In this document: one piece after another, positions 1 to 57,120 of the stretch
Layout of the letters: the number at the start of each line of letters is the position of its first letter
Numbering within the stretch: the first letter of the stretch is position 1
Assembly (NCBI GenBank): GCA_051530055.1
Contig: CM121341.1
Coordinates: 7,790,784-7,854,783, forward strand
DNA length: 64,000 bases
Reading direction: 5' to 3'
Source of the DNA: Neoechinorhynchus agilis
Lineage: Eukaryota; Animalia; Acanthocephala
Program-made: the position numbers and the translations under genes
The notes under the pieces: model-generated
What the model was told of the DNA's origin: nothing
The model's input: the letters and a program-made list of their open reading frames with translations, nothing else
The model's database searches: none

Positions 1-476
1 AACGTCTTTTATGTCACGTCTTAATTTAAAAATCAATAATCGATCAATAAAGGTGAATTTGGAAACTTTACATTGGGTTTTTCTGAAATTTTAAGTCTTT
101 CTGGGGGCAATATTTATTAATACGTTTTGGAATTTATAATTTTTGATCCAAATTGGTAGATCCCATTATCGATTTTTCATCGATCGTCGATTTCTTCTCT
201 TGTAGACCTTTTCAAAACGTCGTTTATGTCACGTCTTTTTTAAAAATCAATAATCGATCAATATAGGTGAATTTGGAAACTTTACATTGGGTTTTTCTGA
301 GAATCAAAGTCTTTCTGGGGGCAATATTTATTGATACGTTCTAGAATTTATAATCTTTGATCCAAATTAGTTGATACCATTATCGATTTTTCATCGATCG
401 TCGATTTCTTCTCTTGTAGACCTTTTCAAGAAAGGTTTTTTATGTCACGTCTTTGAAAAAATCAATAATCGATCGC
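1..476. repeat. Tandem repeat family A (~215 bp unit, ~2 copies, cut by window start)
   Basis: ATGTCACGTC recurs at 11, 226 and 442. The reverse complement array lies at 56647-57775. Confidence 0.9.
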
Positions 477-1532
477 TAATAAATTGATTATGGCAATCAA
501 GTCCTTCAATTTAGCCTTTCGTTGATTGGGTTGCGTAACCTGAAGAAATTTTGGCTGATCTTCAAATTTTGATCACTGACCAAAGGATCGGAAAATGCGT
601 TAATTGCCGAATGCTCATCTTTGTAGTCAAGATTAAAGAGTGTTTCCACTTTTAATCCACGCAAACAGATCAAAAGTACGAACGGATCATTAAAACGATC
701 ATAGATTTTTGAATTATGGTCGTCCTGGCGATTCTTAAAGTTTAAAATTGAAAATTGATTTTTTAATGCATGCGATGACTAATCTTTAACATGATTTTAA
801 ATTGATTTTTTTCCATTTAAAAATTCAGTACAATTTGGTATTCTGCCAAAAGTCCATTATGTTCCTCACGTTTTCGTGAAAGTGGCAACTTTAAGTAAAT
901 CAGATGAGAATTTAGCGAATGTGAAAGCTTAATTTATCTTATGAGTGTGAAATGGACTTATTATCTTAATTTTCCTTGAGAACATAATGGAAAAGCTTTA
1001 GTTTTTTTGCACTGTAAAATCTTCTCATATTTTCATAGACTGTGAAAGCTTTGGATGATAATTTGATTTTTCGTAATTCACACCAAGACTTGTCTATGTT
1101 CGATATTAAAGATTTTATCAATGACTTCCTTCTTAGTTGCTCAATTAATTCGATTTTTTATCGAGATCACAATCATAAACTCAAAGTAAAGCTAACACCG
1201 AGCCGTGATTAATTTCGCAATGTGCCATCGTTTTCTTATGGAAAACTGATCCAGATACGATCTAATGGTCAGCGGTCTCATGTTTCCACATTTGAACTGC
1301 GCTGTTTGGGATCCAAAAACTTACGATTTTGATGTGCGTTATCGATTTTAAAAGAAATTAGTCGGCTTTTTTATTTGAACGAATCGGTTTATCAAATGTG
1401 ACAAACTGAAAAAAAAGAAGGAATTTATGGGAAGGATTCGTAACCTTTAAGATTTATAGTTTGTGATATGATTAAAGAATTTATAAATTTTTATTACACA
1501 TCCTCAGATTTACAAAATAATCCCATTTGAAA

Positions 1533-1958
1533 TCATCGCTGTACAAGAATGAGAGGTTTAAAGTATTTCGGAGCTTTTAAAAACTTAAAGTTGAATGTCG
1601 ATTTCGTTGAAGTATTCTTGAAGCATTGCTGCGTTGCTTTCACTGAATAATCGTTTGCCAAAATTTGTTCAATCGAAAACGACAAACGTTCCTTCTTTGT
1701 TCGGACTCTTCGCTGGCAAGGTTCAATGTTTTCTTTGAAACTTTTTGATTTTGAACGTTCTCTTTTATTAGCCAACCATTTGGTTATTTGTCCTCGTCGA
1801 AGTCCTGTTGTGCTTGAAGCCGTTTCAAGGTCGAACGATGTCATGTAAGGACATTGGCGATTTTCTTCAAACCATTTGTTAAGATAAGAAATTGCTTCAT
1901 TGCTAAAACGAATGTTTCGTCTGTTCGAAAGCATCGCGTTCAAGTTGTTGGTTTGCAT
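1533..1958 (-). CDS. Divergent TALE-class homeodomain protein with eh1 motif (copy 1)
   Basis: RRNIRFSNEAISYLNKWFEENRQCPYM...GLRRGQITKWLANKRER has a 3-aa loop extension (F-x7-Y) and W48/N51/R53. FSIEQIL follows downstream. Confidence 0.8.
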   Translation of the reverse strand: MQTNNLNAMLSNRRNIRFSNEAISYLNKWFEENRQCPYMTSFDLETASSTTGLRRGQITKWLANKRERSKSKSFKENIEPCQRRVRTKKERLSFSIEQILANDYSVKATQQCFKNTSTKSTFNFKFLKAPKYFKPLILVQR

Positions 1959-3899: not shown

Positions 3900-5060
3900 T
3901 GGAATTCCCAACTATTGACTCTTCAACATCGCCATGTAATTTGTGGCTCTATTTCTGATCAAGAATACCCTCTTCATTCCGAAACTACTTTATAAACTGC
4001 GCACGGCTTCCTTCTCAAGCACATCGATAAGTTAAAGAAGTTCGATGACATTGTGAAGGCGTGTCTTGAGCACATTTTAAATATCCAGCTATCAGACGAG
4101 CCCTGGCGACAAGCTTCATTGCCTGTATCGTCCGGTGCCTTGGGTATTCGAGAAACAGTAGAATGTGTCGTTGCCCACGTATTTGGGATCATTCGAAGGG
4201 AGTCGGGATCTGGTAAAACGTATACTGGGACCGAAGTTCTGTTTAACGGACGAATTTCTAGTAGCGGTCCAAGAATGGTAGGAGCAAACGGGTTACAACC
4301 AAGTTCCCGTGAATGAAGCAGTCTAACGGGGATTAACCTTTAGTCGCCCTAGCTCATAGTTCTCTAATTTCAGGCTCTCGAGACGAGGTCGACCGGGCTA
4401 GATTGCTGGCAGTCTCTGCAAGAGAACCGGGAGCATGGTTAGAAGCCCTACTCCGTGGGAACGCTCTTCGTAGACGAAGCAGTTCGGATCGGAGTGTCCC
4501 TCAGATTAGGTCTACCGATTTGTGTCGAACATCGTTGCCGGTGTGGAATGATCGTGGATCCACTACATGGTCTTGTTTGCAACAAATCAGGGGGTCGTTT
4601 CTCACGGAATGCTGAAATGAACGACGTAATTTCGCGTGCCCTAAATACGGTCAACGTCCCAAACATTTTAGAGCCAAGAAACCTGTTCGGGTTGGATGGT
4701 CGTCGTCCGGATGGCTCCCGTGGCGAAAAGGCAAATGTCTTCTCCTGGACGTGTGGTGCAGTCCCCAGGGGAAGCGGCTGCTGCGGCGGAGGACCGAAAG
4801 GTGGCCAAATCTAAGGAATTAAGTAGATCTGACGTTTTTATACCCTTTGGAGTGGAGACTCTTGGTGCGCTCGGTAGCGCGGCACTTAGATTTACGAAGG
4901 AGTTATCGACTAGACTCCAGGCCAAGACATGAAATACAAGAGCCGATGCCTTCCTACGCCAAAATATTGTGTGGTCGCGATCCAAAGAGGAAACGCAGCG
5001 AGTGTGGTCGCGATCACTGAGGGGAGAGCGACGACTCTTCGTGGACGGTGGTGATTGTTT
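3900..5060 (+). mobile_element. Degraded, 5'-truncated CRE-clade non-LTR retrotransposon (RT C-terminus, zinc knuckle, restriction-like endonuclease)
   Basis: Frameshifted motifs in expected order: [101 protein letters not shown]. Confidence 0.85.
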
Positions 5061-5365
5061 AAACGTTTTTTGTAGTGTTTGTAACAAAAAGTATAATAAA
5101 ATTTCGACACATGTAATTGAAACTGAAAATAAAAAGGTCTCGTTCTGGTCGATTGTCAAAATATATAAAATAACGATTGCATTAAACATTTAAATAGGTA
5201 GTTGTTGGTTCGAGTATAAACGTGAACCGATTGGCCGTTTTAAAATAGTTATTTGAATCTTTTTCCACTTTATATAGGACCAAAAAACACATTCAGAAAC
5301 AACATTCTCCCCTCCAAAGTCAACTGGTTAATTCATACACTTCATTGTCATCCAAGTCCTTTTAG

Positions 5366-6390: not shown

Positions 6391-7465
6391 TTAAATAATA
6401 CGAATCGGATCATCGCCATCATTAAGTATGTCTATTTCTAGCTCAGGAAATAATGTTTTCAGTGCACCCAGCAACACATCTAAGAGATATCCTCGCTCAC
6501 AATTTGAATGTTCGGTCAAAACGACGATTATATCGCGATGGATGGCATCAAGCAGTTGGTGGTGACCCATTTCACCGGTTAAGAACATAGAATTCGACGG
6601 TACATGTTTTAATAGAGATCCACCAGATCCAGGACAAATAGCGATTGATCGAACTTTAGGATCTTCGACGTGATTAGAGGTTACTCGAAGGTGGTTCAGC
6701 TTCAGGAAATTCTTTATAAGTTGAACAATTCTCGATACTTCAATAGGACTTTTTAAGCTAACAAGTCGTCCATTGCCCATCCAATGATTCGACATTAAGA
6801 ATGAGAACCTTTGTTTTTGCGCCATAGCAATACTTGTGTCCATCAGGCCAGTGATTTCTTGTCGTTCAAGGGGTTCCAGTGTAAAATCCATCTTTGCTAA
6901 AAAGAAAGTTTATTCTTTTAAGCGAGTAGTTAAGCTTAAACCTGACCTATTTAAAGCGTTCGCATGACCTTAAAAAAACTTAAATTCGAAAAATTCAAAG
7001 ATTAACTTAGGGCAGTTTGTTTTTATGGAAACGGAACACTCTCCGACCTCTAGAAGGAAAAGCAACGATTTAAGGAAGATTACCTTCTTTGAACATCGAT
7101 GCTAGCCAATCATTTACTCCACCGTACATACTGTCAAGGGCAGTATGAGGAGAGTAAATTGAAAGATTATTTTGAATACACTTCAACATTATCTCCTTCT
7201 GCCAATCGGACTCGGTTATGATCGATTTTATCGATCGGAAAATGATTGGATGATAGGTTAAGATCAAGCAGTGTTCGTTGTTGCTCTTGTTGATAGCGTC
7301 CTGAAGGGCTTTTGAAGTTAGGTCGTTTGTTAGAAACATGCGATGAACGAGGCGTGACTGGTCGCCAACAAGAAGACCGACGTTGTCCCATTCAGCCGCA
7401 GATTGGATGGTGAACAAAGCCGATAAGCGATTTGAAAGTATCTTTAATGTCATTTGTGCTGACAT
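6391..7465 (-). CDS. NIF3L1: NIF3-like protein 1 (DUF34 family), spliced
   Basis: AAEWDNVGLLVG, LTNDLT, YHPIIF, YSPHTALD, GVNDWLA; AICPGSGG, LTGEMGHH, HSNCERGYL. Intron(s) lie between ~6896 and ~7083; exact exon structure unresolved. Confidence 0.93.
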
Positions 7466-7519
7466 ATCTGAAAAAAACTTGACGTGAATAAACGTAAAGT
7501 ACCATTGTTATTGTGATTT

Positions 7520-10500
7520 TATCGGTAGATGTTCAAAAATCACCATAGCCAAAGGATTGTCACTTCGGACGTTCATTGGCTGAATATTTACGGATTTTGG
7601 CGGAACCTTTTTTGGGGGGCGGAGGTATTGAGAAAACCACTTCAGTATTAAAAAAAAGGCGATTGAACCCTTCATTTCGGTGAGTCCGATTTTCGGTTAG
7701 ATGTTCAAAAATAACTATAGCCAAAGGATTGTCACTTCGGACGTTCATTCGCTGAATATTTACGGATTTTGGCGTAACCTTTTTTTGGGCGACGACGGAC
7801 GTATTGAGAAAACCACTTCAGTAATAAAAAAGCGATTGAATCCTTCGTTTCTCTGAGTCCGTTTTTCGGTTAGATGTTCAAAAATCACTATAGCCAAAGG
7901 ATTGTCACTTCGGACGTTCATTGGCTGAATATTTACGAATTTTGGCGTAACCTTTTTTGGAAGGCGGAGGTATTGAGAAAACCACTTCAGTAATAAAAAA
8001 GCGATTGAATCCTTCGTTTCTGTGAGTCCGTTTTTCGGTTAGATGTTCAAAAATCACTATAGCCAAAGGATTGTCGCTTCGGACGTTCATTCGCTGAATA
8101 TTTACGGATTTTGGCGTAACCTTTTTTTGGGGGGCGGAGGTATTGAGAAAACCACTTCAGTAATAAAAAAAGCGATTGAACCCTTCATTTCGGTGAGTCC
8201 GTTTTTCGGTTAGATGTTCAAAAATCACCATAGCCAAAGGATTGTCGCTTCGGACGTTCATTCGCTGAATATTTACGGATTTTGGCGTAACCTTTTTTTG
8301 GGCGACGACGGACGTATTGAGAAAACCACTTCAGTATTAAAAAAAGGCGATTGAACCCTTCGTTTCTGTGAGTCCGTTTTTCGGTTAGATGTTCAAAAAT
8401 CACCATAGCCAAAGGATTGTCACTTCGGACGTTCATTGGCTGAATATTTACGGATTTTGGCGGAACCTTTTTTGGAAGGCGGAGGTATTGAGAAAACCAC
8501 TTCAGTAATAAAAAAGCGATTGAATCCTTCGTTTCTGTGAGTCCGTTTTTCGGTTAGATGTTCAAAAATCACCATAGCCAAAGGATTGTCACTTCGGACG
8601 TTCATTCGCTGAATATTTACGGATTTTGGCGTAACCTTTTTTTGGGCGACGACGGACGTATTGAGAAAACCACTTCAGTATTAAAAAAAGGCGATTGAAC
8701 CCTTCGTTTCGGTGAGTCCGTTTTTCGGTTAGATGTTCAAAAATCACCATAGCCAAAGGATTGTCGCTTCGGACGTTCATTGGCTGAATATTTACGGATT
8801 TTGGCGGAACCTTTTTTTGGGGGGGGAGGTATTGAGAAAACCACTTCAGTATTAAAAAAAGGCGATTGAACCCTTCGTTTCTGTGAGTCCGTTTTTCGGT
8901 TAGATGTTCAAAAATCACTATAGCCAAAGGATTGTCGCTTCGGACGTTCATTCGCTGAATATTTACGGATTTTGGCGTAACCTTTTTTTGGGCGACGACG
9001 GACGTATTGAGAAAACCACTTCAGTATTAAAAAAGCGATTGAATCCTTCGTTTCTGTGAGTCCGTTTTTCGGTAGATGTTCAAAAATCACCATAGCCAAA
9101 GGATTGTCGCTTCGGACGTTCATTGGCTGAATATTTACGGATTTTGGCGGAACCTTTTTTTGGGGGGGCGGAGGTATTGAGAAAACCACTTCAGTATTAA
9201 AAAAGCGATTGAATCCTTCGTTTCGGTGAGTCCGTTTTTCGGTTGATGTTCAAAAATCACCATAGCCAAAGGATTGTCGCTTCGGACGTTCATTCGCTGA
9301 ATATTTACGGATTTTGGCGTAACCTTTTTGGGCGACGACGGACGTATTGAGAAAACCACTTCAGTAATAAAAAAGCGATTGAATCCTTCGTTTCGCTGAT
9401 TCCGTTTTTCGGTAGATGTTCAAAAATCACCATAGCCAAAGGATTGTCGCTTCGGACGTTCATTGGCTGAATATTTACGGATTTTGGCGGAACCTTTTTT
9501 TGGGCGACGACGGACGTATTGAGAAAACCACTTCAGTATTAAAAAAGCGATTGAATCCTTCGTTTCTGTGAGTCCGTTTTTCGGTAGATGTTCAAAAATC
9601 ACCATAGCCAAAGGATTGTCGCTTCGGACGTTCATTGGCTGAATATTTACGGATTTTGGCGGAACTTTTTTTTGGGGGGGAGGACGTATTGAGAAAACCA
9701 CTTCAGTATTAAAAAAGCGATTGAATCCTTCGTTTCGGTGAGTCCGTTTTTCGGTAGATGTTCAAAAATCACCATAGCCAAAGGATTGTCGCCTCGGACG
9801 TTCATTGGCTGAATATTTACGGATTTTGGCGTAACCTTTTTTGGGCGACGACGGACGTATTGAGAAAACCACTTCAGTAATAAAAAAGCGATTGAATCCT
9901 TCGTTTCGCTGATTCCGTTTTTTTCGGTAGATGTTCAAAAATCACCATAGCCAAAGGATTGTCGCTTCGGACGTTCATTCGCTGAATATTTACGGATTTT
10001 GGCGTAACCTTTTTTTGGGCGACGACGGACGTATTGAGAAAACCACTTCAGTATTAAAAAAAGGCGATTGAACCCTTCGTTTCGGTGAGTCCGTTTTTCG
10101 GTTAGATGTTCAAAAATCACCATAGCCAAAGGATTGTCGCTTCGGACGTTCATTGGCTGAATATTTACGGATTTTGGCGGAACCTTTTTTTGGGGGGGAG
10201 GTATTGAGAAAACCACTTCAGTATTAAAAAAGCGATTGAACCCTTCGTTTCGGTGAGTCCGTTTTTCGGTTAGATGTTCAAAAATCACTATAGCCAAAGG
10301 ATTGTCACTTCGGACGTTCATTGGCTGAATATTTACGGATTTTGGCGTAACCTTTTTGCGACGACGGACGTATTGAGAAAACCACTTCAGTATTAAAAAA
10401 GGCGATTGAATCCTTCGTTTCGCTGATTCCGTGTTTTTTTCGGTAGATGTTCAAAAATCACCATAGCCAAAGGATTGTCGCTTCGGACGTTCATTGGCTG

Positions 10501-11340
10501 AATATTTACGGATTTTGGCGGAACCTTTTTTTGGGGGGGAGGTATTGAGAAAACCACTTCAGTATTAAAAAAGCGATTGAATCCTTCGTTTCTGTGAGTC
10601 CGTTTTTCGGTTAGATGTTCAAAAATCACCATAGCCAAAGGATTGTCGCTTCGGACGTTCATTGGCTGAATATTTACGGATTTTGGCGGAACCTTTTTTT
10701 GGGGGGACGGACGTATTGAGAAAACCACTTCAGTATTAAAAAAGGCGATTGAATCCTTCGTTTCGGTGAGTCCGTTTTTCGGTAGATGTTCAAAAATCAC
10801 CATAGCCAAAGGATTGTCGCTTCGGACGTTCATTCGCTGAATATTTACGGATTTTGGCGTAACCTTTTTTTGGGCGACGACGGACGTATTGAGAAAACCA
10901 CTTCAGTAATAAAAAAGCGATTGAATCCTTCGTTTCTGTGAGTCCGTTTTTCGGTAGATATTCAAAAATCACCATAGCCAAAGGATTGTCGCCTCGGACG
11001 TTCATTGGCTGAATATTTACAGATTTTGGCGTAACCTTTTTTTGGGCGACGACGGACGTATTGAGAAAACCACTTCAGTAATAAAAAAACGATTGAATCC
11101 TTCGTTTCTGTGAGTCCGTTTTTCGGTAGATATTCAAAAATCACCATAGCCAAAGGATTGTCGCCTCGGACGATCATTGGCTGAATATTTACGAATTTTG
11201 GCGGAACCTTTTTTTGGGCGACGACGGACGTATTGAGAAAACCGCTTCAGTATTAAAAAAAGCGATTGAATCGTTCGTTGCCGTGGTTCCGTTTTTTTTC
11301 GGTTAAATGTTCAAAAATCACCATAGCCAAAGGATTGTGT
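7520..11340. repeat. Tandem satellite B (~172 bp unit, ~22 copies)
   Basis: GTTCAAAAATCACCATAGCCAAAGGATTGTC recurs every ~172 bp (7531, 7703, 7876...). ORFs here are repeat translations. Confidence 0.97.
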
Positions 11341-12459: not shown

Positions 12460-14690
12460 AAGACTTTTAAAATGGATCACAGGATGCTATAAATTCGAGA
12501 CTTGAGATTATTGAGGCCATCTCGAATTTTGATTATTCGATTTTGTCCAAAAAAAACTTGAAATATTTGCGTCGTCGCTTGAACTCATGAGGACATTTTG
12601 TCGAATTATCGAGTTCTAGAATTTGAGTTTGGCGAGACTTTTTTTTCTTAGCCACCAAATCCGATTTTTCTCGTATCTTTACACGAACTTGTCACTTTTT
12701 ATCCTTAGTTTTTAAAACATTCACTCAAAGTTCTCACTTATTTGAGGGAGACTTTTAAAATGGATCACAGGATGCTATAAATTCGAGACTTGAGATTATT
12801 GAGGCCATCTCAAATTTTGATTATTCGATTTTGTCCAAAAAAACTTGAAATATTTGCGTCGTCGCTTGAACTCATGAGGACATTTTGTCGAATTATCGAG
12901 TTCAAGAATTTTAGTTTGGCGAGACTTTTTTTTCTTAGCCACCAAATCCGATTTTTCTCGTATCTTTACACGAAATTGTCACTTTTTATCCTTAGTTTTC
13001 AAAACATTCACTCAAAGTTCTCACTTATTTGAGGGAGACTTTTAAAATGGATCACAGGATGCTATAAATTCGAGACTTGAGATTATTGAGGCCATCTCGA
13101 ATTTTTATTATTCGATTTTGTCCAAAAAAACTTGAAATATTTGCGTCGTCGCTTGAACTCATGAGGACATTTTGTCGAATTATCGAGTTCTAGAATTTGA
13201 GTTTGGCGAGACTTTTTTTTCTTTAGCCACCAAATCCGATTTTTCTCGTATCTTTGCTCGAAATTGTCACTTTTTATCCTTAGTATTTTAAACATTCACT
13301 CAAAGTTCTCACTTATTTGAGGGAGACTTTTAAAATATAAAGATCACAGGATACTATAAATTCGAGACATGGATTCTTGAGATTATTGAGGCCATCGCGA
13401 ATTTTTATTATTCGATTTTGTCCAAAAAAACTTGAAATATTCAAATATTTGCGTCGTCGCTTGAACTCATGAGGACATTTTGTCGAATTATCGAGTTCTA
13501 GAATTTGAGTTTGGCGAGACTTTTTTCTTAGCCACCAAATCCGATTTTTCTCGTATCTTTGCTCGAAATTGTCACTTTTTATCCTTAGTATTTTAAACAT
13601 TCACTCAAAGTTCTCACTTATTTGAGGGAGACTTTTAAAATGGATCACAGGATGCTATAAATTCGAGACTTGAGATTATTGAGGCCATCTCGAATTTTTA
13701 TTATTCGATTTTGTCCAAAAAAACTTGAAATATTCAAATATTTGCGTCGTCGCTTGAACTCATGAGGACGTTTTGTCGAATTATCGAGTTCTAGAATTTG
13801 AGTTTGGCGAGACTTTTTTTTCTTAGCCACCAAATCCGATTTTTCTCGTATCTTTGCTCGAAATTGTCACTTTTTATCCTTAGTTTTTAAAACATTCACT
13901 CAAAGTTCTCACTTATTTGAGGGAGACTTTTAAAATGGATCACAGGATGCTATAAATTCGAGACTTGAGATTATTGAGGCCATCTCGAATTTTGATTATT
14001 CGATTTTGTCCAAAAAAACTTGAAATATTTGCGTCGTCGCTTGAACTCATGAGGACATTTTGTCGAATTATCGAGTTCTAGAATTTTAGTTTGGCGAGAC
14101 TTTTTTTTCTTAGCCACCAAATCCGATTTTTCTCGTATCTTTACACGAAATTGTCACTTTTTATCCTTAGTTTTTAAAACATTCACTCAAAGTTCTCACT
14201 TATTTGAGGGAGACTTTTAAAATGGATCACAGGATGCTATAAATTCGAGACATGGATTCTTGAGATTATTGAGGCCATCTCGAATTTTTATTATTCGATT
14301 TTGTCCAAAAAAACTTGAAATATTTGCGTCGTCGCTTGAACTCATGAGGACGTTTTGTCGAATTATCGAGTTCTAGAATTTGAGTTTGGCGAGACTTTTT
14401 TTTCTTAGCCACCAAATCAGATTTTTCTCGTATCTTTGCTCGAAATTGTCACTTTTTATCCTTAGTATTTTAAACATTCACTCAAAGTTCTCACTTATTT
14501 GAGGGAGACTTTTAAAATGGATCACAGGATGCTATAAATTCGAGATATGGATTCTTGAGATTATTAAGGCCATCTCGAATTTTTATTATTCGATTTTGTC
14601 CAAAAAAACTTGAAATATTCAAATATTTGCGTCGTCGCTTGAACTCATGAGGACATTTTGTCGAATTATCGAGTTCTAGAATTTGGGTTT
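12460..14690. repeat. Tandem satellite C (~290 bp unit, ~8 copies)
   Basis: ATGGATCACAGGATGCTATAAATTCGAGAC recurs every ~288-300 bp. Confidence 0.96.
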
Positions 14691-14823
14691 TGCGATACGA
14701 TAAAAAAACTCAATTTTTCTAAGCAAGAATTGGTGAATCCTTAAAAAATGCGGTTCATAATAATCTCAAAAAAAAAGAGTTTTACTACTACCAAACCTTT
14801 TTCACACACCGTCCCGGTGACAT

Positions 14824-27430: not shown

Positions 27431-27547
27431 AAAATCAACCGAAATCTAAAGATCGGTCGTTCAGAAAATTAGATTAAATCAGCGATTTTCCGCTCAACCA
27501 AAACAACAATATTTATGTGTACCCTGAACCGAACGGTAAAGAGTTTG

Positions 27548-33840: not shown

Positions 33841-34163
33841 GAAGAAGCGAGCTTACCTCCTGGTTATCGGACTAATAGAAAAACCCGTTAAAAATCGATT
33901 ATTTTGGTCGATACGAGAAATCGGATTGATAATCCTAGAATTTTTCTGCTGAAGAGACCCGATCTTTACCGCTCTCGCATTTTCCTGTACCGAATTATGC
34001 AGAGCACTATTCTCAGCGAATAGCATACTCTAAAGCATCATTCCTAGCTTCGCAAGACCTATTTTTGTCGTAGAATCATAGTGTCTCAGTAGGATATATG
34101 CTCCGCGGTTCGGTTTATGCTTCCACCACAATCCGACATCTTCCCTCGCAATCATCTTCAGAA

Positions 34164-38737: not shown

Positions 38738-40346
38738 TCACCATGATTCAAATTGAAGTTTCTGTCCTTCGATTCTCGTTTTCCTCGCTTTTTTCTTAAT
38801 TTCATACTCATTTGTTTCGTCATGATCCGAATCTTCTGAACCCTGAGATTTGTCCGTGGTTTCCAAAGTAGTATTTAGATATCTACCAACACGATTGCCA
38901 AGTATTTCTCGATTTCTTTTCACTGTCGTTCTACAACTTTCTAGTTCCATTCGTAACTCCTCTTCCAACCGCAAGCGTTCATTGTCGAATGGATCAACAT
39001 AGATAATCGTCTCAACAATCTTAACATCAATTCTTGGTTTGTCCTTCTTATTCACATCCAAATCCTCAATCGTCTTAAGCACGCCAAGTCCTCCTACGAC
39101 CCTACCAAAGACACTGTGATTTCCGTCCAATTCCGGTCTCGGTCTATATAAAATAAAAAACTGTGAACGATTGGTGTTTGGACCGGAATTGGCCATACTT
39201 AAGACTCCCCTCGAATCATGCTTCAATTGTTTCGCAATCTCATCTCCAAACGGTTTTCCCCAAGCTGATTGACCACCTTTTCCGCTATTTGTAGGATCAC
39301 CCGTTTGCAATATAAAGTTTTTGATCGAACGAAAAAATAGACAGTCATCGTAGTAGTTCCGTCGGCACAAAAGCATGAAATTATGAACAGTCTTCGGAAC
39401 TATATCCGCATAGAGTTCTAGGTTCAAGTTACCCAATGAAGTCCGTATTTAAAAAAAGATCACCTATTCTCACCAAATGACCTTTTCTTGTCTTTAAACT
39501 AACATAAGCCTTTCGTTTTGTCTTTAATACTCTCGATTGAATGACCGTGTCCTTATCATTCTGCAAAGGTATCAATTCGGTCACTGGCTCAATGACTGTT
39601 GATGTGAGTGAAGCAGCCAATTGTCCCGTTGATATATGAGACGCCATTATCTTCGAAACAGGCCTTTTCTTAATGTCACAATCGTGCTTTTGTTCATTAG
39701 TTTCGTCTAATTGTTTCAATACACACAATGCTTCTACGCTAACGTTATTGAGACATGAAGATTTATCTAACGGTTCAATTTGATCATTTAAAACAAGTTC
39801 TTGTTTCACATGATAAAAATCGCCGATCTTCTCGTCCAGTTCGAGAGATCGTTTCGGGTCCTGAATCCGTATAATATCTTTCTTTCCCAAGAACGGTGTA
39901 TCACTCAGAAGATCCCGGTAATTCTGAGTCTTTATATTCAACTCATTTACAGCATCTTCGCTAAATACATTGCCACTCGATCGAATCGCAACGATCGGGG
40001 TGTGAGCGTTAAAGACTTTAAACGTGACTGGACAATGAAAATCCCCAGATTCATTTAAATGGAATTTCAAATCGATTATGTCATCTAAGGAGCATTTCTC
40101 TCCATTTATCGGATTTCGTTTATAGTTAGTGATAAACGATCGAACGGACTCTCGATCAAATACGTGTCCATCCGTGCCATAAATTGCGGCGGCTTCCTTA
40201 AATGGCTTAAAAGTGAGAGAACAAACGAAGAATGGTAGATGTGACCGAGGTTTCTTTGGATTTACTGGAGTGCGACCACCGTACACTTCACGCCATTCAG
40301 TACAGGTCAAGTAGAGTTTGTCCTTTTGATGCTGCTTTTTACCCAT
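38738..40346 (-). CDS. PPIL2: RING/U-box E3 ligase cyclophilin PPIL2 (Cyp60)
   Basis: MGKKQHQKDKLYLTCTEW start, Rtf2-like RING blocks and cyclophilin domain (PKTVHNF, RSIKNFILQTGDPT, LSMANSGPNTNRSQFFI). One short intron near 39418-39463. Confidence 0.96.
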
Positions 40347-40569: not shown

Positions 40570-43500
40570 TCAAACAGAAAACTATTCTTTTTTCTCGGTT
40601 AAATGTGAATAATTTCAAAAAAATCGATAAATAGAAGAAATCGAAAAGCGCTCAGGAAAATCATAGTGAATAATTTGAAAAATTAATCTCTTAAATCAAA
40701 ATTATTCTCTTTTTCTCGGCTAAAGATGAATAATTTCAAAAAAATCGATAAATAGAAGAAATCGAAAAGCGCTCAGGAAAATCATAGTGAATAATGTGAA
40801 AAATTAATATCTTAAATAAAAATTATTCTCTTTTTCTCGGTTGAAGATGAATAATTTCAAAAAATCGATTAATTGAAGAAATCGAGAAGCGCTCAGCAAA
40901 ATCATAGTGAATAATGTGAAAAATTAATCTCTTAAATCAAAATTATTCTCTTTTTCTCGGTTAAAGATGAATAATTTCAAAAAAATCGATTAATAGAAGA
41001 AATCGAAAAGCGCTCAGGAAAATCATAGTGAATAATGTGAAAAATTAATCTCTTAAATCAAAATTATTCTCTTTTTCTCGGTTAAAGATGAATAATTTCA
41101 AAAAAATCGATTAATTGAAGAAATCGAAAAGCGCTCAGGAAAATCATAGTGAATAATGTGAAAAATTAATCTCTTAAATCAAAATTATTCTCTTTTTCTC
41201 GGTTAAAGATGAATAATTTAAAAAAATCGATTAATTGAAGAAATCGAAAAGCGCTCAGGAAAATCATAGTGAATAATGTGAAAAATTAATCTCTTAAATC
41301 AAAATTATTCTCTTTTTCTCGGTTAAAGATGAATAATTTCAAAAAATCGATTAATAGAAGAAATCGAAAAGCGCTCAGGAAAATCATAGTGAATAATGTG
41401 AAAAATTAATCTCTTAAATCAAAATTATTCTCTTTTTCTCGGTTAAAGATGAATAATTTCAAAAAAATCGATTAATTGAAGAAATCGAAAAGCGCTCAGG
41501 AAAATCATAGTGAATAATGTGAAAAATTAATCTCTTAAATCAAAATTATTCTCTTTTTCTCGGTTAAAGATGAATAATTTCAAAAAAATCGATTAATAGA
41601 AGAAATCGAAAAGCGCTCAGGAAAATCATAGTGAATAATGTGAAAAATTAATCTCTTAAATCAAAATTATTCTCTTTTTCTCGGTTAAAGATGAATAATT
41701 TCAAAAAAATCGATTAATAGAAGAAATCGAAAAGCGCTCAGGAAAATCATAGTGAATAATGTGAAAAATTAATCTCTTAAATCAAAATTATTCTCTTTTT
41801 CTCGGTTAAAGATGAATAATTTCAAAAAAATCGATTAATTGAAGAAATCGAAAAGCGCTCAGAATATAGTGAATAATGTGAAAAATTAATTTTAAATAAA
41901 ATTATTTCTTCTCGTTAAAGATGAATAATTTCAAAAAATCGATTAATAGAAGAAATCGAAAAGCGCTCAGGAAAATCATAGTGAATAATGTGAAAAATTA
42001 ATCTCTTAAATCAAAATTATTCTCTTTTTCTCGGTTAAAGATGAATAATTTCAAAAAAATCGATTAATAGAAGAAATCGAAAAGCGCTCAGGAAAATCAT
42101 AGTGAATAATGTGAAAAATTAATCTCTTAAATCAAAATTATTCTCTTTTTCTCGGTTAAAGATGAATAATTTCAAAAAAATCGATTAATTGAAGAAATCG
42201 AAAAGCGCTCAGGAAAATCATAGTGAATAATGTGAAAAATTAATCTCTTAAATCAAAATTATTCTCTTTTTCTCGGTTAAAGATGAATAATTTCAAAAAA
42301 ACGATTAATTGAAGAAATCGAAAAGCGCTCAGGAAAATCATAGTGAATAATGTGAAAAATTAATCTCTTAAATCAAAATTATTCTCTTTTTCTCGGTTAA
42401 AGATGAATAATTTCAAAAAAATCGATTAATTGAAGAAATCGAAAAGCGCTCAGGAAAATCATAGTGAATAATGTGAAAAATTAATCTCTTAAATCAAAAT
42501 TATTCTCTTTTTCTCGGTTAAAGATGAATAATTTCAAAAAAATCGATTAATTGAAGAAATCGAAAAGCGCTCAGGAAAATCATAGTGAATAATGTGAAAA
42601 ATTAATCTCTTAAATCAAAATTATTCTCTTTTTCTCGGTTAAAGATGAATAATTTCAAAAAAATCGATTAATAGAAGAAATCGAAAAGCGCTCAGGAAAA
42701 TCATAGTGAATAATGTGAAAAATTAATCTCTTAAATCAAAATTATTCTCTTTTCTCGGTTAAAGATGAATAATTTCAAAAAATCGATTAATTGAAGAAAT
42801 CGAAAAGCGCTCAGGAAAATCATAGTGAATAATGTGAAAAATTAATCTCTTAAATCAAAATTATTCTCTTTTTCTCGGTTAAAGATGAATAATTTCAAAA
42901 AATCGATTAATAGAAGAAATCGAAAAGCGCTCAGGAAAATCATAGTGAATAATGTGAAAAATTAATCTCTTAAATCAAAATTATTCTCTTTTTCTCGGTT
43001 AAAGGTGAATAATTTCAAAAAATCGATTAATTGAAGAAATCGAAAAGCGCTCAGGAAAATCATAGTGAATAATGTGAAAAATTAATCTCTTAAATCAAAA
43101 TTATTCTCTTTTTCTCGGTTAAAGATGAATAATTTCAAAAAAATCGATTAATTGAAGAAATCGAAAAGCGCTCAGGAAAATCATAGTGAATAATGTGAAA
43201 AATTAATCTCTTAAATCAAAATTATTCTCTTTTTCTCGGTTAAAGATGAATAATTTCAAAAAAATCGATTAATTGAAGAAATCGAAAAGCGCTCAGGAAA
43301 ATCATAGTGAATAATGTGAAAAATTAATCTCTTAAATCAAAATTATTCTCTTTTTCTCGGTTAAAGATGAATAATTTCAAAAAAATCGATTAATTGAAGA
43401 AATCGAAAAGCGCTCAGGAAAATCATAGTGAATAATGTGAAAAATTAATCTCTTAAATCAAAATTATTCTCTTTTTCTCGGTTAAAGATGAATAATTTCA

Positions 43501-44400
43501 AAAAAATCGATTAATAGAAGAAATCGAAAAGCGCTCAGGAAAATCATAGTGAATAATGTTAAAAATTAATCTCTTAAATCAAAATTATTCTCTTTTTCTC
43601 GGTTAAAGATGAATAATTTCAAAAAAATCGATTAATTGAAGAAATCGAAAAGCGCTCAGGAAAATCATAGTGAATAATGTGAAAAATTAATCTCTTAAAT
43701 CAAAATTATTCTCTTTTTCTCGGTTAAAGATGAATAATTTCAAAAAAATCGATTAATAGAAGAAATCGAAAAGCGCTCAGGAAAATCATAGTGAATAATG
43801 TGAAAAATTAATCTCTTAAATCAAAATTATTCTCTTTTTCTCGGTTAAATGTGAATAATTTAAAAAAATCGATTAATTGAAGAAATCGAAAAGCGCTCAG
43901 GAAAATCATAGTGAATAATGTGAAAAATTAATCTCTTAAATCAAAATTATTCTCTTTTTCTCGGTTAAAGATGAATAATTTCAAAAAAATCGATTAATAG
44001 AAGAAATCGAAAAGCGCTCAGGAAAATCATAGTGAATAATGTGAAAAATTAATCTCTTAAATCAAAATTATTCTCTTTTTCTCGGTTAAAGATGAATAAT
44101 TTCAAAAAAATCGATTAATTGAAGAATTCGAAAAGCGCTCAGGAAAATCATAGTGAATAATGTTAAAAATTAATCTCTTAAATCAAAATTATTCTCTTTT
44201 TCTCGGTTAAAGATGAATAATTTCAAAAAAATCGATTAATTGAAGAAATCGAAAAGCGCTCAGGAAAATCATAGTGAATAATGTTAAAAATTAATCTCTT
44301 AAATCAAAATTATTCTCCTTTTCTCGGTTAAAGATGAATAATTTCAAAAAAATCGATTAATTGAAGAATTCGAAAAGCGCTCATGGAAATCATAGTGAAT
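40570..44400. repeat. Tandem satellite G (~120 bp unit, ~31 copies, highly homogeneous)
   Basis: GAAATCGAAAAGCGCTCAGGAAAATCATAGTGAATAATGTG recurs every ~120-121 bp. Confidence 0.98.
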
Positions 44401-44569
44401 AATCGAGCAAAAAGCGGATATTGATCAGGTCTTCCGTGCTTTTACGATTCTCGTTTGATCTTTTGAACGTCGATGAAAAACTGCATTGAATTTCCGTCTT
44501 TATTGTGTATTTCGATTTCCCTATCGATCTTTATTCTATTAATAATGAATTTCGGATGAACATTTTAAT

Positions 44570-44770: not shown

Positions 44771-45115
44771 GTCATTGGCGATATTCTTCATCTCTTTAAG
44801 TGTTTCCTCTTCACATCTTTCCTCAGTGTATGAACAATCCGCTCCGTAGCCCACAAGGATTAATTTGTCCGGTTTTTTCTTCAAAATCCTTTACTCGCTT
44901 GTCTCTGATGCCGCATAACCTTTTCAGAAAATCTTTATCCTCATCGCGAATGATTTCTTTAATCTTTTCTAAGATTTCCTCGCAATCAGCAGATTTCAAA
45001 TGATCGGGGCTTTCCGAACAAATTAATCCTTGTGGGCTACGGAGCGGATTGTTCATACACTGAGGAAAGATGTGAAGAGGAAACACTTAAAGAGATGAAG
45101 AATATCGCCAATGAC
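44771..45115. repeat. Perfect 98 bp inverted repeat (44771-44868 / 45018-45115) with 149 bp spacer
   Basis: GTCATTGGCGATATTCTTC...GGATTAATTTGT is the exact reverse complement of ACAAATTAATCC...GAATATCGCCAATGAC. Confidence 0.95.
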
Positions 45116-48578: not shown

Positions 48579-49135
48579 GAGGAAGCTTCCAATTTTGAAA
48601 TATCTAAATAAACGATTTCTTATCCAAGAGGAATTAAGATTCTAACATCTGAGTCCAGCTTCCAGCCAGGCGCCGGACTCCTTCGAGGAAGCTTCCAATT
48701 TTGAAATATCTAAATAAACGATTTCTTATCCAAGAGGAATTAAGATTCTAACATCTGAGTCCAGCTTCCAGCCAGGCGCCGGACTCCTTCGAGGAAGCTT
48801 CCAATTTTGAAATATCTAAATAAACGATTTCTTATCCAAGAGGAATTAAGATTCTAACATCTGAGTCCAGCTTCCAGCCAGGCGCCGGACTCCTTCGAGG
48901 AAGCTTCCAATTTTGAAATATCTAAATAAACGATTTCTTATCCAAGAGGAATTAAGATTCTAACATCTGAGTCCAGCTTCCAGCCAGGCGCCGGACTCCT
49001 TCGAGGAAGCTTCCAATTTTGAAATATCTAAATAAACGATTTCTTATCCAAGAGGAATTAAGATTCTAACATCTGAGTCCAGCTTCCAGCCAGGCGCCGG
49101 GCTCCTTCGAGGAAGCTTCCAATTTTGAAATATCT
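48579..49135. repeat. Near-perfect tandem repeat H (106 bp x5.3) containing a CRE-like coding fragment
   Basis: GAGGAAGCTTCC at 48579, 48685, 48791, 48897, 49003 and 49109. Minus strand reads SKLEASSKE(S/P)GAWLEA. Confidence 0.95.
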
Positions 49136-50312: not shown

Positions 50313-52170
50313 ATGAAGGATGCCAAATGTTTAAGAAATGAAGATGAAACCATTGAACAACTTAACCGATTGATCGGGAGCGGTCAAGCATTGAGAAATG
50401 GACACCTTGAATGGTTGAGTACACGAACTGACCTTATGAGGGTATTTACTTGCTGTTGTCGACTTTGGGATAGTTTTTATGAGCCATTATTGGAAGCATG
50501 TTCAAAAATAAAGTTCGAGAAACACTTTGATTTACGAATGAAGATTGAGCGAGTGATCGACGAAGGAGTTGAGCTATTTCACGAATTCCATAAAATGGTA
50601 TCAGATCGTTCATGTGAGGAACAAAAAAGAGAGATTGTACTTATGGACTTACTTCTCAAAACCGGCGATCTTCTTAGCCTCAAGTATAATCTTCAAACTC
50701 CACATTCGCTATATAAGACGTCTATTAAAGATGTTATGAACGTTTACTTAAGCATCGAAGGTAGCAAATACCAATCTGCTAGGGCGTTGGAATATGAAAA
50801 GCTTTCGAGGTTATTAATGAATGAACGTGGACAACCTTATTTGTTGGGATCTGTGTATTATGGATTATTGTCCTTAGAAATGGCAAATGGATCCAAAGAA
50901 GTAGCCGAAGATTCAAGGAAAGACATAAAAAGTAGGATTCGTACTCTTGTGTCGGATATAATTGTTAAAAGTGGAGCCATAGAAAAAGTAGAGATTTATG
51001 TCGGACTTCAAAAGGATTCATTCTTCACATGAAAGGAATGCTTAATTCAGAGGATGGGGTGAAACCTTTTCTAGAAAACAATCATTAAGAATTCCTTCTA
51101 TAGTTGAAATGAGAAGCCAAAAAATCCAATGCCGTCTCAAAAAAACATCGCTAAACAAATCGGACGGATTCGTTCATATATTCTTAAGCGACCTTTATAG
51201 TTGCCATGAAACATCATCGGGAGCAATAACGGCTGAAATTACAAGATCGTTTTGCGACTCGATAATGGATGCAATGGAATCCGGCGTCCGTAGAGATGTT
51301 GAAAAGACAGTGTTTGTGATGGCTTCCATTATGAGCAAATGTATGAGAGGCAAAGGAGAAGAATTCCATCAGTTTATGGCAATGTCCGACTTTTGCGAAC
51401 CTATTTTAAGAGCATCTCTTGTACTTTCCAAAGACAAGGGTTCTGAAATCGCATTGGCTGCATTTGGGATAATGGCCGATTTGTGGATAGATGTTGGCTT
51501 CAACGACAAAACCATGACTCGAGACCTATTGGAAGCAACAAATGATTTTCCCGATAAATTCGATATTGATTTCAAAATCGAGACAATATTGGGACCATGG
51601 GCTGTACACCAGGTATTACATGATATTTTGCCATTAAACCAAACTTCACTCAAGTTCAAAATTCGGCAAATTGTACGATGTTTAAAAGTTGAAAACAGTG
51701 GAGATTTTATAGAGCCTATTTATAGACTTCTGAATATTGTACTCGATACCAATGCCATTCTGTACGATCGGCGAAAGATCGACGAAGTTAAGCGTTTGAT
51801 TGATGTGAAGTGTGTTGTTCCAAGTGTGGTTTTAAAAGAATTGGATAATTTGGCGAAGAAGGGGAAAACGACAACGCAGGATGCGAGGGAATCTATAGAT
51901 TGGATTCTTGATCATAAAAGAAAAGGAAACTTAAGGATTTGTTACGACCACGAGCATAGTCGTGTACTTTCCCGAATCAATGATGAATCGATCCTTGATT
52001 GCGCTCGTTTCGCAGAACGCAGGCATCGATATTTGTACAAGGAAACACAGACTTCAGTTTTGGTGTCTAATGATTTAAATTTGAGAAATAAAGCTCGAGC
52101 TGATGATGTTGCAGCACTAAAGCCGGGATCACTTCTTGCATTTATAAACAGTGTCACAAAGCTCCATTAG
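50313..52170 (+). CDS. SMG6/EST1-like protein with C-terminal PIN nuclease domain (junction near 50950-51105 unresolved)
   Basis: N-terminal GDL...YQ.A.AL...GSVYYG..SL resembles the EST1 helical domain. PIN motifs: IVLDTN, VVPSVVLKELDNLAK, INDESILDC, LVSNDLNLRNKA. Confidence 0.72.
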
Positions 52171-53456
52171 AATAATTGAATCTACAGAACCAATATAAAA
52201 TCGAGTTCGTTCGAATGGATACAACTGAGCAAAATGAAATAGAAAAGGGAAATATGTCGAGAAAGGATACAAGATCATTTGAAACGAACGCTAGTCGTGT
52301 TTGCTAGTTATAGTCAAATAAAAAGAAAGACGCATTTCACAATCTAAACTATAAAGGAGATTATAAAAGATGCTACTCCAAATAGTTTTTTTATTACGCT
52401 CTCATTGGTAGAAAGTGTTTTTTTCTCGAATACAGTTTGTTTAAACTAAATTTTCTGAAGAGCATTTTAATCGACATAAAAAAAGGACAGAAAAACGAGT
52501 TAAACGGCGATATAAAGGAATCTGCGATCGATGAAGAGAATCGCCAATATTCCCGTAAGTTTTCATAGTGACCAATGTCCAGACGAAGCAAATAGAAAAG
52601 GACGAGCTCGATAAAATATCAGAATTCATTGAGATGTGGTGGTCATAATCCATTTAAAAATTTACTTTAGAAATGCCTGAAAAGAGGTGGATTTTGTCCA
52701 CGAAATATTATAAGACAAATCTAAAAAAATCATCATTATAACGCTAGTTTCGACAGTAGTTTGCTTTAATTTATGGCGATCAAATTTGGCGCTTTTGAAT
52801 CAATAGAAGATATTTCCGACAAGCATCAATAATAGATATTAAACTTCTTGATTTGAGCGACCGACATTCAATTGCCGAGAATCTACTTACGATAGGATTA
52901 AGTTATCCGTTTTATAAATGAAAAAGATTTGACTTGTGACGAGCGTTAAATTGTATCCATCCGAAAATGTACAAAAATAAACTAAAACAAATTTTTTTAC
53001 TTTTTAAAAAAAAGTAAAACTTAATTATTTGCTATCCTCATTGACTTTTTGAAAATTTGGAATCGGTTTACCGCTTTTACGTATGATATCTCTACATTTT
53101 GAAAGCCTTTTTGTCAATTGGATTTCGGAATTATTGTTTAAAAGTCTTCACCTGATAAATAATTTTTTTGTTAAAACCTTTAGAGCATCGTCGTGTTCAT
53201 CATCAGTAAGGAATAATTCTTATAATATAGCCCAGTTTCTCGTCACAAATCGATATCTTTGGATTTCAGTACAAACGGCAATTCAGCTCAGCTAAGAAAA
53301 TTTTGACGAGTGTAAAGTCTATAAAATGGAATTTATGCGTAAAACGTGCGATTTAACATTTCGGGCCAATAAACGTATAGATTTCTCTTAAAAGCGCAAG
53401 ATTATTCGTCGGCGAATTATGAAGTTTTTTCACGCCATTCCGAATTTTTTACAGCA

Positions 53457-53535
53457 CTGCCTCATCACCTATCGTTTCTCTCAATTTCTTCGAGAGATCC
53501 CTTTATTTTCGTACCTTCCGCTGCACCTCCAGCGA
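53457..53535 (-). mobile_element. Tiny internally deleted CRE-clade relic
   Basis: Minus strand: AGGAAEGTK and DLSKKLRETIGDE. AATTTCTTCGAGAGATCC is shared with ~37620. Confidence 0.45.
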
Positions 53536-54685
53536 TTTCAAGAGACTATGAAGTTGCAAACAAAACGACAGAAGGTTAAAATAATGCAAAAATTGTGATC
53601 GCACACTACTTCGAATTTTTTAATACCTTAAAAATGTAGATAAATAGTTAAATCGGTTTAATGAAACAACGATGATCGCACTGATGTGATCGTCTTAAAA
53701 CTAGAAATTAACTTTAAAGAAAAATTATCAGGAAAGATGTCAGTTCACTTGCTAAAGAGGCAAATCAATTCAAATTTTTTTAGGATTATATCAAAATCGG
53801 CTTTTCAAAAACTTATACCCTAGCAGTTCGCAGACGTCCAGCGTTTCTGCTCAAGAGAAGAAACTGATAACTGTTGATAGTTGCGTGAATTCCGAGATTC
53901 GTAGAAATTTGATGAGACCTCAGCATCTTGGTTTTGATTTTTCTATAGTAATTGGCGAAAGTGATAGCGTAAGCAGTTCAAATAGTGAGATAAAAGTGGA
54001 TCATGGCATGAGCGCTGATATTGTTCAAAAGATAGCCGAAACACTCAGTTCCAATATGACCGAATCAATGGCGAAACCCACCAAAGACGAGACTAATAAT
54101 TTAAAATAATTGTTGCTGGGACGTTTCTGTTGTGCTAATAGAACATTTCGCGGATCTGGATCCTTCTCGGATGTTATTTTGGTTCAGTTTGAAGAAGATT
54201 AATTTATCGTCACGTAATCACACTCGAACAACAAAAACGGTGTTAAAAGTGACTTATTATATTCATTGGCAAAAGTATTTCTATAGCAGATAAAATCAAT
54301 TAGTTCGTAGAGGAGAGCTATGCACAACAATGGAATTACCATCAAATCGTTCAAGAGATAAATTTTCATCTTCGTTGCATAAATCCATTGTACACCCTTC
54401 TTTTGTAAAGCGATAGAATGACCTTTCAAGAATGTACTTGGAAAACAAAAGTCTTATTTTATACACACAGAAAAAAACAAAGTATTTATGATTCACATCA
54501 TCGTGGTTTACGATTTTATTCGTTATATTTTCTCCGCGCTATGGAATATCCTAAATCCCAATGGGGAGGCCAAGAAATGTCTTTGTTCTAACCGAGAATA
54601 CGATTTTGTCGACAAAAAAAGTTAACTCACGATAAAAAAAATTTATGTTATATTTAATTATATCGCTCTTTATTATTAGAAGCTC

Positions 54686-57120
54686 AAATTAGATTCCCTG
54701 TTGGATCTGCTCAATCGATTGTCTACAAACAAAACCAATATTGCACATTAATTTCATTCTTGCATCCAAAGCATCCGCCAAACAAAAGATTTATAGGGAC
54801 GAAATTCCCATGTTTTTTAAATTTTAACAAAAAATGTGAATTTGTAAGCCTTAATAAAATCCGATTGCTGAGATGCCAAAAAAAACTGATAAAATCTTTA
54901 ATCACTATAATGAATTCGCTTATGAAAGAGTAGAAATTTGAATTCATTATCGGCCACTAAACTGAGCATGACGACTTCCTTAATTTATGCGATTGCATAA
55001 TGTTCACACTTGAACACGAAAACTAATTATAGCATCGATCTCGGTATCTCCATGATCAAGAAAACGATACTGAAATCTGATTGGCTGGATCATTATCTGA
55101 TTAATTTACTACTAAGCAAACGAAAGGCTACTCGTTGATCGTTTCCAGAAATAGAGAAAACCAATGCAAACCAACAACTTGAACGCGATGCTTTCGAACA
55201 GACGAAACATTCGTTTTAGCAATGAAGCAATTTCTTATCTTAACAAATGGTTTGAAGAAAATCGCCAATGTCCTTACATGACATCGTTCGACCTTGAAAC
55301 GGCTTCAAGCACAACAGGACTTCGACGAGGACAAATAACCAAATGGTTGGCTAATAAAAGAGAACGTTCAAAATCAAAAAGTTTCAAAGAAAACATTGAA
55401 CCTTGCCAGCGAAGAGTCCGAACAAAGAAGGAACGTTTGTCGTTTTCGATTGAACAAATTTTGGCAAACGATTATTCAGTGAAAGCAACGCAGCAATGCT
55501 TCAAGAATACTTCAACGAAATCGACATTCAACTTTAAGTTTTTAAAAGCTCCGAAATACTTTAAACCTCTCATTCTTGTACAGCGATGATTTCAAATGGG
55601 ATTATTTTGTAAATCTGAGGATGTGTAATAAAAATTTATAAATTCTTTAATCATATCACAAATTATAAATCTTAAAGGTTACGAATCCTTCCCATAAATT
55701 CCTTCTTTTTTTTCCGTTTGTCACATTTGATAAACCGATTCGTTCAAATAAAAAAGCCGACTCATTTCTTTTAAAATCGATAACGCACATCAAAATCGTA
55801 AGTTTTTGGATCCCAAACAGCGCAGTTCAAATGTGGAAACATGAGACCGCTGACCATTAGATCGTATCTGGATCAGTTTTCCATAAGAAAACGATGGCAC
55901 ATTGCGAAATTAATCACGGCTCGGTGTTAGCTTTACTTTGAGTTTATGATTGTGATCTCGATAAAAAATCGAATTAATTGAGCAACTAAGAAGGAAGTCA
56001 TTGATAAAATCTTTAATATCGAACATAGACAAGTCTTGGTGTGAATTACGAAAAATCAAATTATCATCCAAAGCTTTCACAGTCTATGAAAATATGAGAA
56101 GATTTTACAGTGCAAAAAAACTAAAGCTTTTCCATTATGTTCTCAAGGAAAATTAAGATAATAAGTCCATTTCACACTCATAAGATAAATTAAGCTTTCA
56201 CATTCGCTAAATTCTCATCTGATTTACTTAAAGTTGCCACTTTCACGAAAACGTGAGGAACATAATGGACTTTTGGCAGAATACCAAATTGTACTGAATT
56301 TTTAAATGGAAAAAAATCAATTTAAAATCATGTTAAAGATTAGTCATCGCATGCATTAAAAAATCAATTTTCAATTTTAAACTTTAAGAATCGCCAGGAC
56401 GACCATAATTCAAAAATCTATGATCGTTTTAATGATCCGTTCGTACTTTTGATCTGTTTGCGTGGATTAAAAGTGGAAACACTCTTTAATCTTGACTACA
56501 AAGATGAGCATTCGGCAATTAACGCATTTTCCGATCCTTTGGTCAGTGATCAAAATTTGAAGATCAGCCAAAATTTCTTCAGGTTACGCAACCCAATCAA
56601 CGAAAGGCTAAATTGAAGGACTTGATTGCCATAATCAATTTATTAGCGATCGATTATTGATTTTTTCAAAGACGTGACAAAAGACGTTTTTTGAAAAGGT
56701 CTACAAGAGAAGAAATCGACGATCGATGAAAAATCGATAATGGTATCAACTAATTTGGATCAAAGATTATAAATTCTAAAACGTATCAATAAATATTGCC
56801 CCCAGAAAGACTTTGATTCTCAGAAAAACCCAATGTAAAGTTTCCAAATTCACCTATATTGATCGATTATTGATTTTTAAAAAAGACGTGACATAAACGA
56901 CGTTTTGAAAAGGTCTACAAGAGAACAAATCGACGATCGATGAAAAATCGATAATGGAATCAACTAATTTGGATAAAAGATTATAAATTCCAAAACGTAT
57001 TAATAAATATTGCCCCAGAAAGACTGATTCTCAGAAAAACACATTGTAAACTTTCCAAATTCACCTCTATTGATCGATTATTGATTTTTTAGAGACGTTT
57101 TTTTGAAAAGGTCTACAAGA
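54686..57120 (+). repeat. Right arm of large inverted segmental duplication
   Basis: Begins CTC|AAATTAGATTCCCTG at 54686 and is colinear with the reverse complement of 2437..1. Confidence 0.95.
55164..55589 (+). CDS. Divergent TALE-class homeodomain protein with eh1 motif (copy 2)
   Basis: 141-aa translation identical to 1533-1958 (-). Confidence 0.8.
   Translation: MQTNNLNAMLSNRRNIRFSNEAISYLNKWFEENRQCPYMTSFDLETASSTTGLRRGQITKWLANKRERSKSKSFKENIEPCQRRVRTKKERLSFSIEQILANDYSVKATQQCFKNTSTKSTFNFKFLKAPKYFKPLILVQR

Follow-up and report, generated by a model that had tools for sequence, protein, structure and literature searches.

An inverted satellite-plus-homeobox unit around a 52-kb gene block in Neoechinorhynchus agilis: a probable segmental duplication with signs of gene conversion

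The window analyzed here is a 64-kb stretch of DNA (C1:7790784-7854783) from the 46.2-Mb, 102-scaffold genome assembly of the acanthocephalan Neoechinorhynchus agilis. Within it, two inverted copies, or arms, of a unit comprising a tandem repeat (denoted satellite A) and a small TALE-class homeobox gene enclose 52.2 kb of DNA. Our analysis suggests that this arrangement is probably an inverted segmental duplication of the satellite-plus-homeobox unit that carries signs of gene conversion. We are highly confident that the structure is real in the N. agilis genome. It reveals no new mechanism and is an ordinary inverted segmental duplication, a new example of a known phenomenon. Read in this way, the locus illustrates the doubling, and then the upkeep of identity, of a small regulator gene in a very compact (46 Mb) parasite genome.

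Architecture of the inverted arms and their homeobox gene

The components of the duplication are as follows, in window coordinates.

-849 to 474 (1 to 474 inside the window): left satellite A array, built of a 214-bp unit with a plain 214-bp period
475 to 2437: left arm, non-satellite part, 1963 bp with 9 differences from the right arm
1533 to 1958, minus strand: left TALE homeodomain gene, a single open reading frame (ORF) of 141 amino acids that points outward (leftward)
2438 to 54685: enclosed segment, 52.2 kb
54686 to 56647: right arm, non-satellite part, the reverse complement of 475 to 2437
55164 to 55589, plus strand: right TALE homeodomain gene, pointing outward (rightward), with a protein identical to that of the left copy
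56648 to 57775: right satellite A array, in which full units alternate with 185-bp units to give a 412-bp higher-order period

Comparison of the window with itself detected a single long inverted pair (440-2244 and 54878-56682; 1805 nucleotides, rounded to 100% complementary), a second inverted block that is 99% complementary (2238-2437 and 54686-54885) and, farther out, weaker satellite matches. Pairwise and three-way comparisons of the non-satellite arms (475-2437 and 54686-56647) identified 9 differences in 1963 bp (0.46%), of which eight are substitutions and one is a 1-bp indel. The identity of the arms is 99.3-99.5% across 2.0-2.2 kb, and two stretches, of 913 and 675 bp, are identical throughout. 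The inner edge is sharp to the base, with similarity between the arms stopping at 2437 on the left and at 54686 on the right.

A genome-wide search recovered three copies of the arm, two on scaffold C1 and a third on the unplaced contig C67. The inner flanks of both arms are unique in the genome, dispersed repeats aside, and unique DNA flanks the arms on all four sides. The duplicated unit comprises satellite A and the 1963-bp arm, totals 2.2-3.3 kb and is absent from the rest of the genome. Satellite A is itself confined genome-wide to the outer sides of both arms and to C67, plus one fragment of 105 bp. The innermost satellite A monomers are 100% identical between left and right, the second monomers have diverged by approximately 3%, and parts of the arrays that lie farther out are 85-97% alike. 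The locus is located at 7.8 Mb on a 19.4-Mb scaffold, away from the scaffold ends, and no runs of N were found within the window, in the 20 kb before it or in the 10 kb after it.

These results bear on an earlier note, made from the letters of the window, which had described most of this layout. Its claims of a sharp inner boundary, of satellite A at both outer ends and of an identical, outward-pointing TALE gene in each arm all agree with the alignments, the mapped arrays and the two 141-residue ORFs, and its estimate of about 480 bp of common upstream DNA is matched by a measured 479 bp, beyond which the sequences are unique to each side. The note had also placed arms of about 2.4 kb and about 99% identity at 1-2437; an inverted repeat is indeed present, although in the alignments its extent is exact only for approximately 218-2437.

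Approximately 1 kb of 3′ flank lies inside the unit together with each small, single-exon TALE gene and the 479 bp upstream of it. A Pfam scan of the 141-residue ORF returned Homeobox_KN (3.2e-8; 33.7 bits against a cut-off of 24). The homeodomain aligns without gaps to yeast MAT alpha2, which is its best match among solved structures (E = 1e-7), and to PBX1/Exd, and it also matches Engrailed. It carries the three-residue loop extension and the W48/N51/R53 residues of the recognition helix that characterize the TALE class; helix 3 reads KWLANKRER. An eh1-like motif, SFSIEQIL, is located near residue 93.

A small TALE paralog that is 42-47% identical lies 84 kb to the left of the window (C1:7706667-7706951), on the minus strand, as does the left copy. 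The paralog has the same recognition helix, KWLANKRER, and a C-terminal eh1-like SFSIDSIL, which yields a family motif of SFSI(E/D)xIL. That a paralog of only 42-47% identity has kept both the helix and the eh1-like motif indicates that the TALE gene family is under constraint. Judging from these sequences, the window gene and the paralog appear to form a lineage-specific TALE-plus-eh1 family. After the paralog, the closest other homeodomain in the genome belongs to a typical member of the Iroquois class. A word-based protein search in which the TALE ORF served as the query, covering proteins of 0.55-1.75 times its length, yielded neither a relative nor an annotated copy; the TALE gene is therefore either unannotated or part of a much longer gene model.

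Signs of gene conversion and the origin of the duplication

The 9 differences between the left and right arms are not spread evenly. Three are found in 1359-1459, at 1359, 1407 and 1459, which are 174, 126 and 74 nucleotides beyond the stop codon of the left ORF, and six in 2135-2345, and there are none in 475-1358 or in 1460-2134, the latter of which contains the whole TALE ORF. In a permutation test on this one left-right pair, the clustering of the 9 differences in two patches was significant (P = 0.0004); the location of 6 of the 9 within the last 303 bp of the arm has P = 0.0007. Divergence within the patches is approximately 2-3%, which is near the 3% of the second satellite monomer. At the 9 sites that distinguish the arms, C67 sides with the right arm at 7 and with the left arm at 2, and it has one private difference. 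The simplest reading of these patterns, which come from one left-right pair and one doubtful third copy, is an older duplication, with arms that would have been partly homogenized by gene conversion and less conversion near the edge.

The divergence of the arms can be compared with that of C67, a contig of 14,738 bp that follows the right arm and its outer flank in collinear order. Positions C67:3-5518 correspond to 54686-60210 of the window, and C67:7262-14738 to 61096-68566 in window coordinates. Alignments of unique DNA between C67 and the scaffold contain 0 differences in 687 positions, 0 in 357, and 3 mismatches with 2 gaps in 4886, and the arm differs at 3 of 1962 positions. C67 has approximately three fewer 177-bp satellite units and approximately nine more 155-bp units than the scaffold, indicating a polymorphism of satellite copy number among the pooled worms. 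From its sequence, C67 appears to be a haplotig of the right arm and its flank that was left uncollapsed, with an allelic divergence of about 0.1%. The 0.46% divergence between the arms is thus 3-4 times that between C67 and the scaffold, the only allelic comparison at hand.

We propose that pairing between the arms, followed by gene conversion, would keep long stretches identical, the whole ORF included, and would leave short patches at about 2-3% divergence. If the same pairing were occasionally resolved by crossing over, the 52 kb would be inverted. The result would be a passive isomerization rather than a switch, since the gene in the two arms is the same and has the same facing relative to the segment. 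After an inversion, each end of the segment would still adjoin a TALE copy and each copy would keep its outer neighbor, such that no alternative output would arise. In practice, the duplication is likely to double the dose of the regulator, with the two copies differing in their distal upstream DNA. One option raised in the earlier note, a recent duplication that placed one regulator in two contexts, is borne out as a description of the structure.

A plausible origin for the repeat, by analogy with other genomes, is an inversion with staggered breaks, in which the DNA at one of the breakpoints would be duplicated and come to lie, in opposite orientations, at the two ends of the segment. Under this model the repeats would be a product of the inversion and not its instrument. 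Two staggered breaks would be expected to leave a second inverted duplicate at the other two junctions; we looked for such a duplicate at those junctions and found none, which would make the event one-sided. Ranz et al. (2007; PMC1885836) found that 17 of 29 inversions in the Drosophila melanogaster group are bordered by inverted copies of genes that were once unique, with a one-sided duplication in 12 of 18. These Drosophila duplications resemble the N. agilis locus in that a formerly unique, gene-bearing stretch lies inverted at the segment ends, originates from one breakpoint and is not repetitive elsewhere.

Several observations weigh against an inverted segmental duplication shaped by gene conversion and generated by staggered breaks. 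Copy number and orientation are taken from the assembly alone, and that assembly, made from a pool of about 50 worms, passed through hybrid assembly, purge_dups, Hi-C scaffolding, manual curation and gap closing (PMC12690905). The clustering of differences, observed in one pair of arms, could stem from uneven mutation or from constraint instead of conversion. Finally, the inversion-coupled duplications that distinguish D. melanogaster from D. yakuba reach at most about 1.9 kb, average about 88% identity and are mostly decayed (PMC1885836), whereas the N. agilis unit is 2.2-3.3 kb long, is more than 99% identical and retains both genes intact.

Alternative explanations and comparison with known systems

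It is possible, although we consider it unlikely, that recurrent homologous recombination between the arms has left the 52 kb in both orientations in the natural population. For such recombination, 2.2 kb of arm sequence at about 99.3% identity is available, including the identical runs of 913 and 675 bp, and the conversion-like patchiness of the differences would imply that the arms pair. The sequenced DNA was pooled from about 50 worms, and inversions between inverted repeats in humans, which span 5-226 kb, are recurrent (PMC3961182). The ends of C67 also bear on this explanation. C67 begins 2 bases past the inner edge of the repeat, and those bases (cg) fit the left inner flank, which reads …tcg before the aaattag of the arm, and not the right inner flank, which reads …ctc before the same bases. 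The far end of C67 lies away from any repeat edge, and the rest of the contig follows the right outer flank.

As evidence of an inverted haplotype, C67 is no more than a hint, since its body is collinear with the right arm and flank and only the 2 bases point to an alternative junction. At the end of a contig, two bases count for very little as evidence: a single inserted base would explain them, and polishing with reads from both arms could produce them. Flye extends contigs through adjacent repeat edges, which would itself put a contig end at a repeat boundary. Moreover, satellite copy number, which is the main difference between C67 and the scaffold, is enough to spawn an alternative contig, and the reciprocal junction was carried by no contig of the assembly in a genome-wide search. 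A related proposal is that the locus is either a 52-kb block that flips naturally, with both orientations coexisting among worms through recurrent recombination between two intact copies of a lineage-specific TALE/eh1 repressor gene, or a scar left very recently by a 52-kb inversion in which a developmental regulator was duplicated; this, too, we hold to be doubtful. If either were true, no such rearrangement would have been described before at the sequence level in the Acanthocephala, and, if both orientations exist, the locus could serve as a simple natural marker in studies of acanthocephalan recombination and population structure.

The assembly itself might have generated one of the arms. 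It was built from Oxford Nanopore Technologies and Illumina reads of about 50 pooled worms of both sexes, supplemented by a small amount of high-fidelity (HiFi) data from two females; MaSuRCA in hybrid mode with Flye was followed by purge_dups, and then by instaGRAAL scaffolding with Hi-C data from one female, manual curation and gap closing (PMC12690905). Such a pipeline can misjudge exactly the orientation and copy number of repeats like these, and the locus marks a spot where this pooled-worm draft assembly merits an orientation check. One arm could thus be a falsely duplicated allele, as the earlier note had cautioned, or two arrangements in the pool could have been merged into a chimeric scaffold, leaving one gene copy per haplotype. 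The heterogeneous pooled input, the length of the pipeline with its Hi-C re-ordering and gap closing, and the survival of an uncollapsed third copy on C67 are compatible with this explanation, and the cg at the end of C67 would suit an arm joined to the left inner flank.

Nevertheless, we regard an artifact as improbable. The arms are 0.46% apart, in patches, compared with about 0.1% between C67 and the scaffold. The satellite A arrays beside the two arms differ in unit structure, unique DNA lies on both sides of each arm, and runs of N are absent. Collectively, the above-allelic divergence, the gapless unique flanks and the differing satellite structures speak against a false duplication from alleles. 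In addition, the junction comprising the arm, satellite A and the right flank is reproduced independently in C67. Lastly, a break in the assembly graph exactly at 2437/54686 requires two continuations at that point, and a single-copy locus, inverted or not, gives one.

We find it highly implausible that the locus is a programmed flip-flop, in which regulated inversion alters the expression of the homeobox gene or of the genes at the segment ends, as in the mating-type switching of methylotrophic yeasts. The resemblance that had led the earlier note to propose a flip-flop locus is in part genuine. Inverted repeats flank a segment of tens of kb, as do the 2-kb repeats around 44 kb in Ascoidea rubescens (PMC6692504), and these repeats could support recombination. 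MAT alpha2 is the best solved-structure match of the homeodomain, and the outer sides of the arms are unlike, with about 6 kb of satellites on the right and a gene on the left. The defining logic of a flip-flop is missing, however: the arms hold identical genes and the interior is housekeeping DNA. In the yeast systems, two different gene sets occupy opposite ends of the segment, one of them beside silencing chromatin, a centromere or a telomere (PMC6692504). Two different gene sets were not found at the ends of the N. agilis segment, where NIF3-like and PIN-domain genes take the place of alternative cassettes. The identical genes, being inside the arms, would keep their outer neighbors and would each still face a segment end after an inversion, and the locus is not near a scaffold end.

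The match to MAT alpha2 reflects features of the TALE class only, as PBX/Exd and Engrailed match as well, and the nearest other homeodomains in the genome are those of the paralog and of the Iroquois gene. A mating-type role suggested by the top match to MAT alpha2 was dismissed, since the similarity is at the level of the class and the organism is a dioecious animal. The single-copy structure, the housekeeping interior and the lack of a transposase likewise ruled out a giant transposon with long terminal inverted repeats.

The flip-flop loci of Ogataea polymorpha, Komagataella phaffii and A. rubescens resemble the N. agilis locus in having repeats of about 2 kb in inverted orientation around tens of kb of DNA, and in the involvement of a TALE-class homeodomain gene (PMC6692504). 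They differ in having unlike gene sets and silencing by a centromere or telomere, whereas in N. agilis, a dioecious animal, both genes are the same, are contained in the repeats and would not be altered by flipping. The analogy to the yeast flip-flop fails because the yeast gene sets are different, sit at opposite ends and are silenced at one of them by the centromere or telomere (PMC6692504), whereas those of N. agilis are identical and lie within the arms.

Polymorphic inversions in humans, such as the HsInv set (PMC3961182) and FLNA-EMD at Xq28, resemble the N. agilis locus in that few-kb inverted repeats of high identity surround tens of kb of genes. Genes can sit inside the repeats of these human inversions, the arms undergo gene conversion, and the inversion is passive and recurrent. 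Both orientations have been demonstrated in people, whereas N. agilis is known from one assembled orientation and its arms are at the short end of the range. Passive isomerizations of this type, including those of plastid inverted repeats, would be better functional analogs of the N. agilis locus than the yeast flip-flop. In plastid genomes and in the yeast 2-micron plasmid, conversion keeps the inverted arms alike and flipping gives equivalent isomers with unchanged gene content. Each of these genomes is small, circular and multicopy and either has much longer arms or relies on a dedicated recombinase, whereas the N. agilis unit occupies a single chromosomal locus with no recombinase nearby.

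Genes and repeats of the enclosed segment

The enclosed segment is an ordinary block of housekeeping genes with at least seven satellite arrays. The following exons were identified.

6391 to 6891, minus strand: NIF3-like exon
29293 to 29976, plus strand: exon of a UDP-sugar pyrophosphorylase (UDPGP)
34098 to 34673, plus strand: exon of an EF-hand protein
38738 to 40346, minus strand: PPIL2 exons, with a U-box/Rtf2-like domain and a cyclophilin domain
51109 to 52170, plus strand: exon of a PIN_4-domain protein

The genes at the ends of the segment are thus NIF3-like on the left and the PIN-domain gene on the right, and each TALE copy sits downstream of, and is co-directional with, the last gene of the segment on its side. 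The PPIL2 exon at 39429-40346 shows 100% identity to an NCBI protein of N. agilis. PPIL2 is represented in the window by two ORFs that overlap by 8 nucleotides, whereas the NCBI model is a single protein of 520 amino acids, which indicates that the two are joined by a very short intron or a change of frame.

Mutually unrelated satellite arrays were identified at 7518-11338, 12461-14695, 18164-19453, 26681-27437, 33073-33846, 40578-44403, 48579-49135, 58463-60739 and 61096-63680. Their units are 106-362 bp long with an internal match of 81-99%, and together they account for approximately 19 kb of the 64-kb window, a striking density for a 46-Mb animal genome. Scans of the window for Rfam families and tRNAs identified neither.

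A dispersed repeat of about 1.15 kb at 3945-5100 is present in more than 50 copies of 77-89% identity on all three large scaffolds. It contains ORFs of 119 and 173 amino acids, and a Pfam scan of the longer one gave no match; the repeat is probably a transposable element. At 53128-53208, an element of about 80 nucleotides has many copies in the genome (78-86% identity), often as inverted pairs about 100 nucleotides apart, and looks like a member of a family resembling miniature inverted-repeat transposable elements (MITEs). Lastly, an inverted repeat at 44771-45115, comprising arms of 102 nucleotides that are 99% complementary around a spacer of 141 nucleotides, has two weak, partial relatives elsewhere in the genome and appears from its sequence to be a low-copy, hairpin-forming element.

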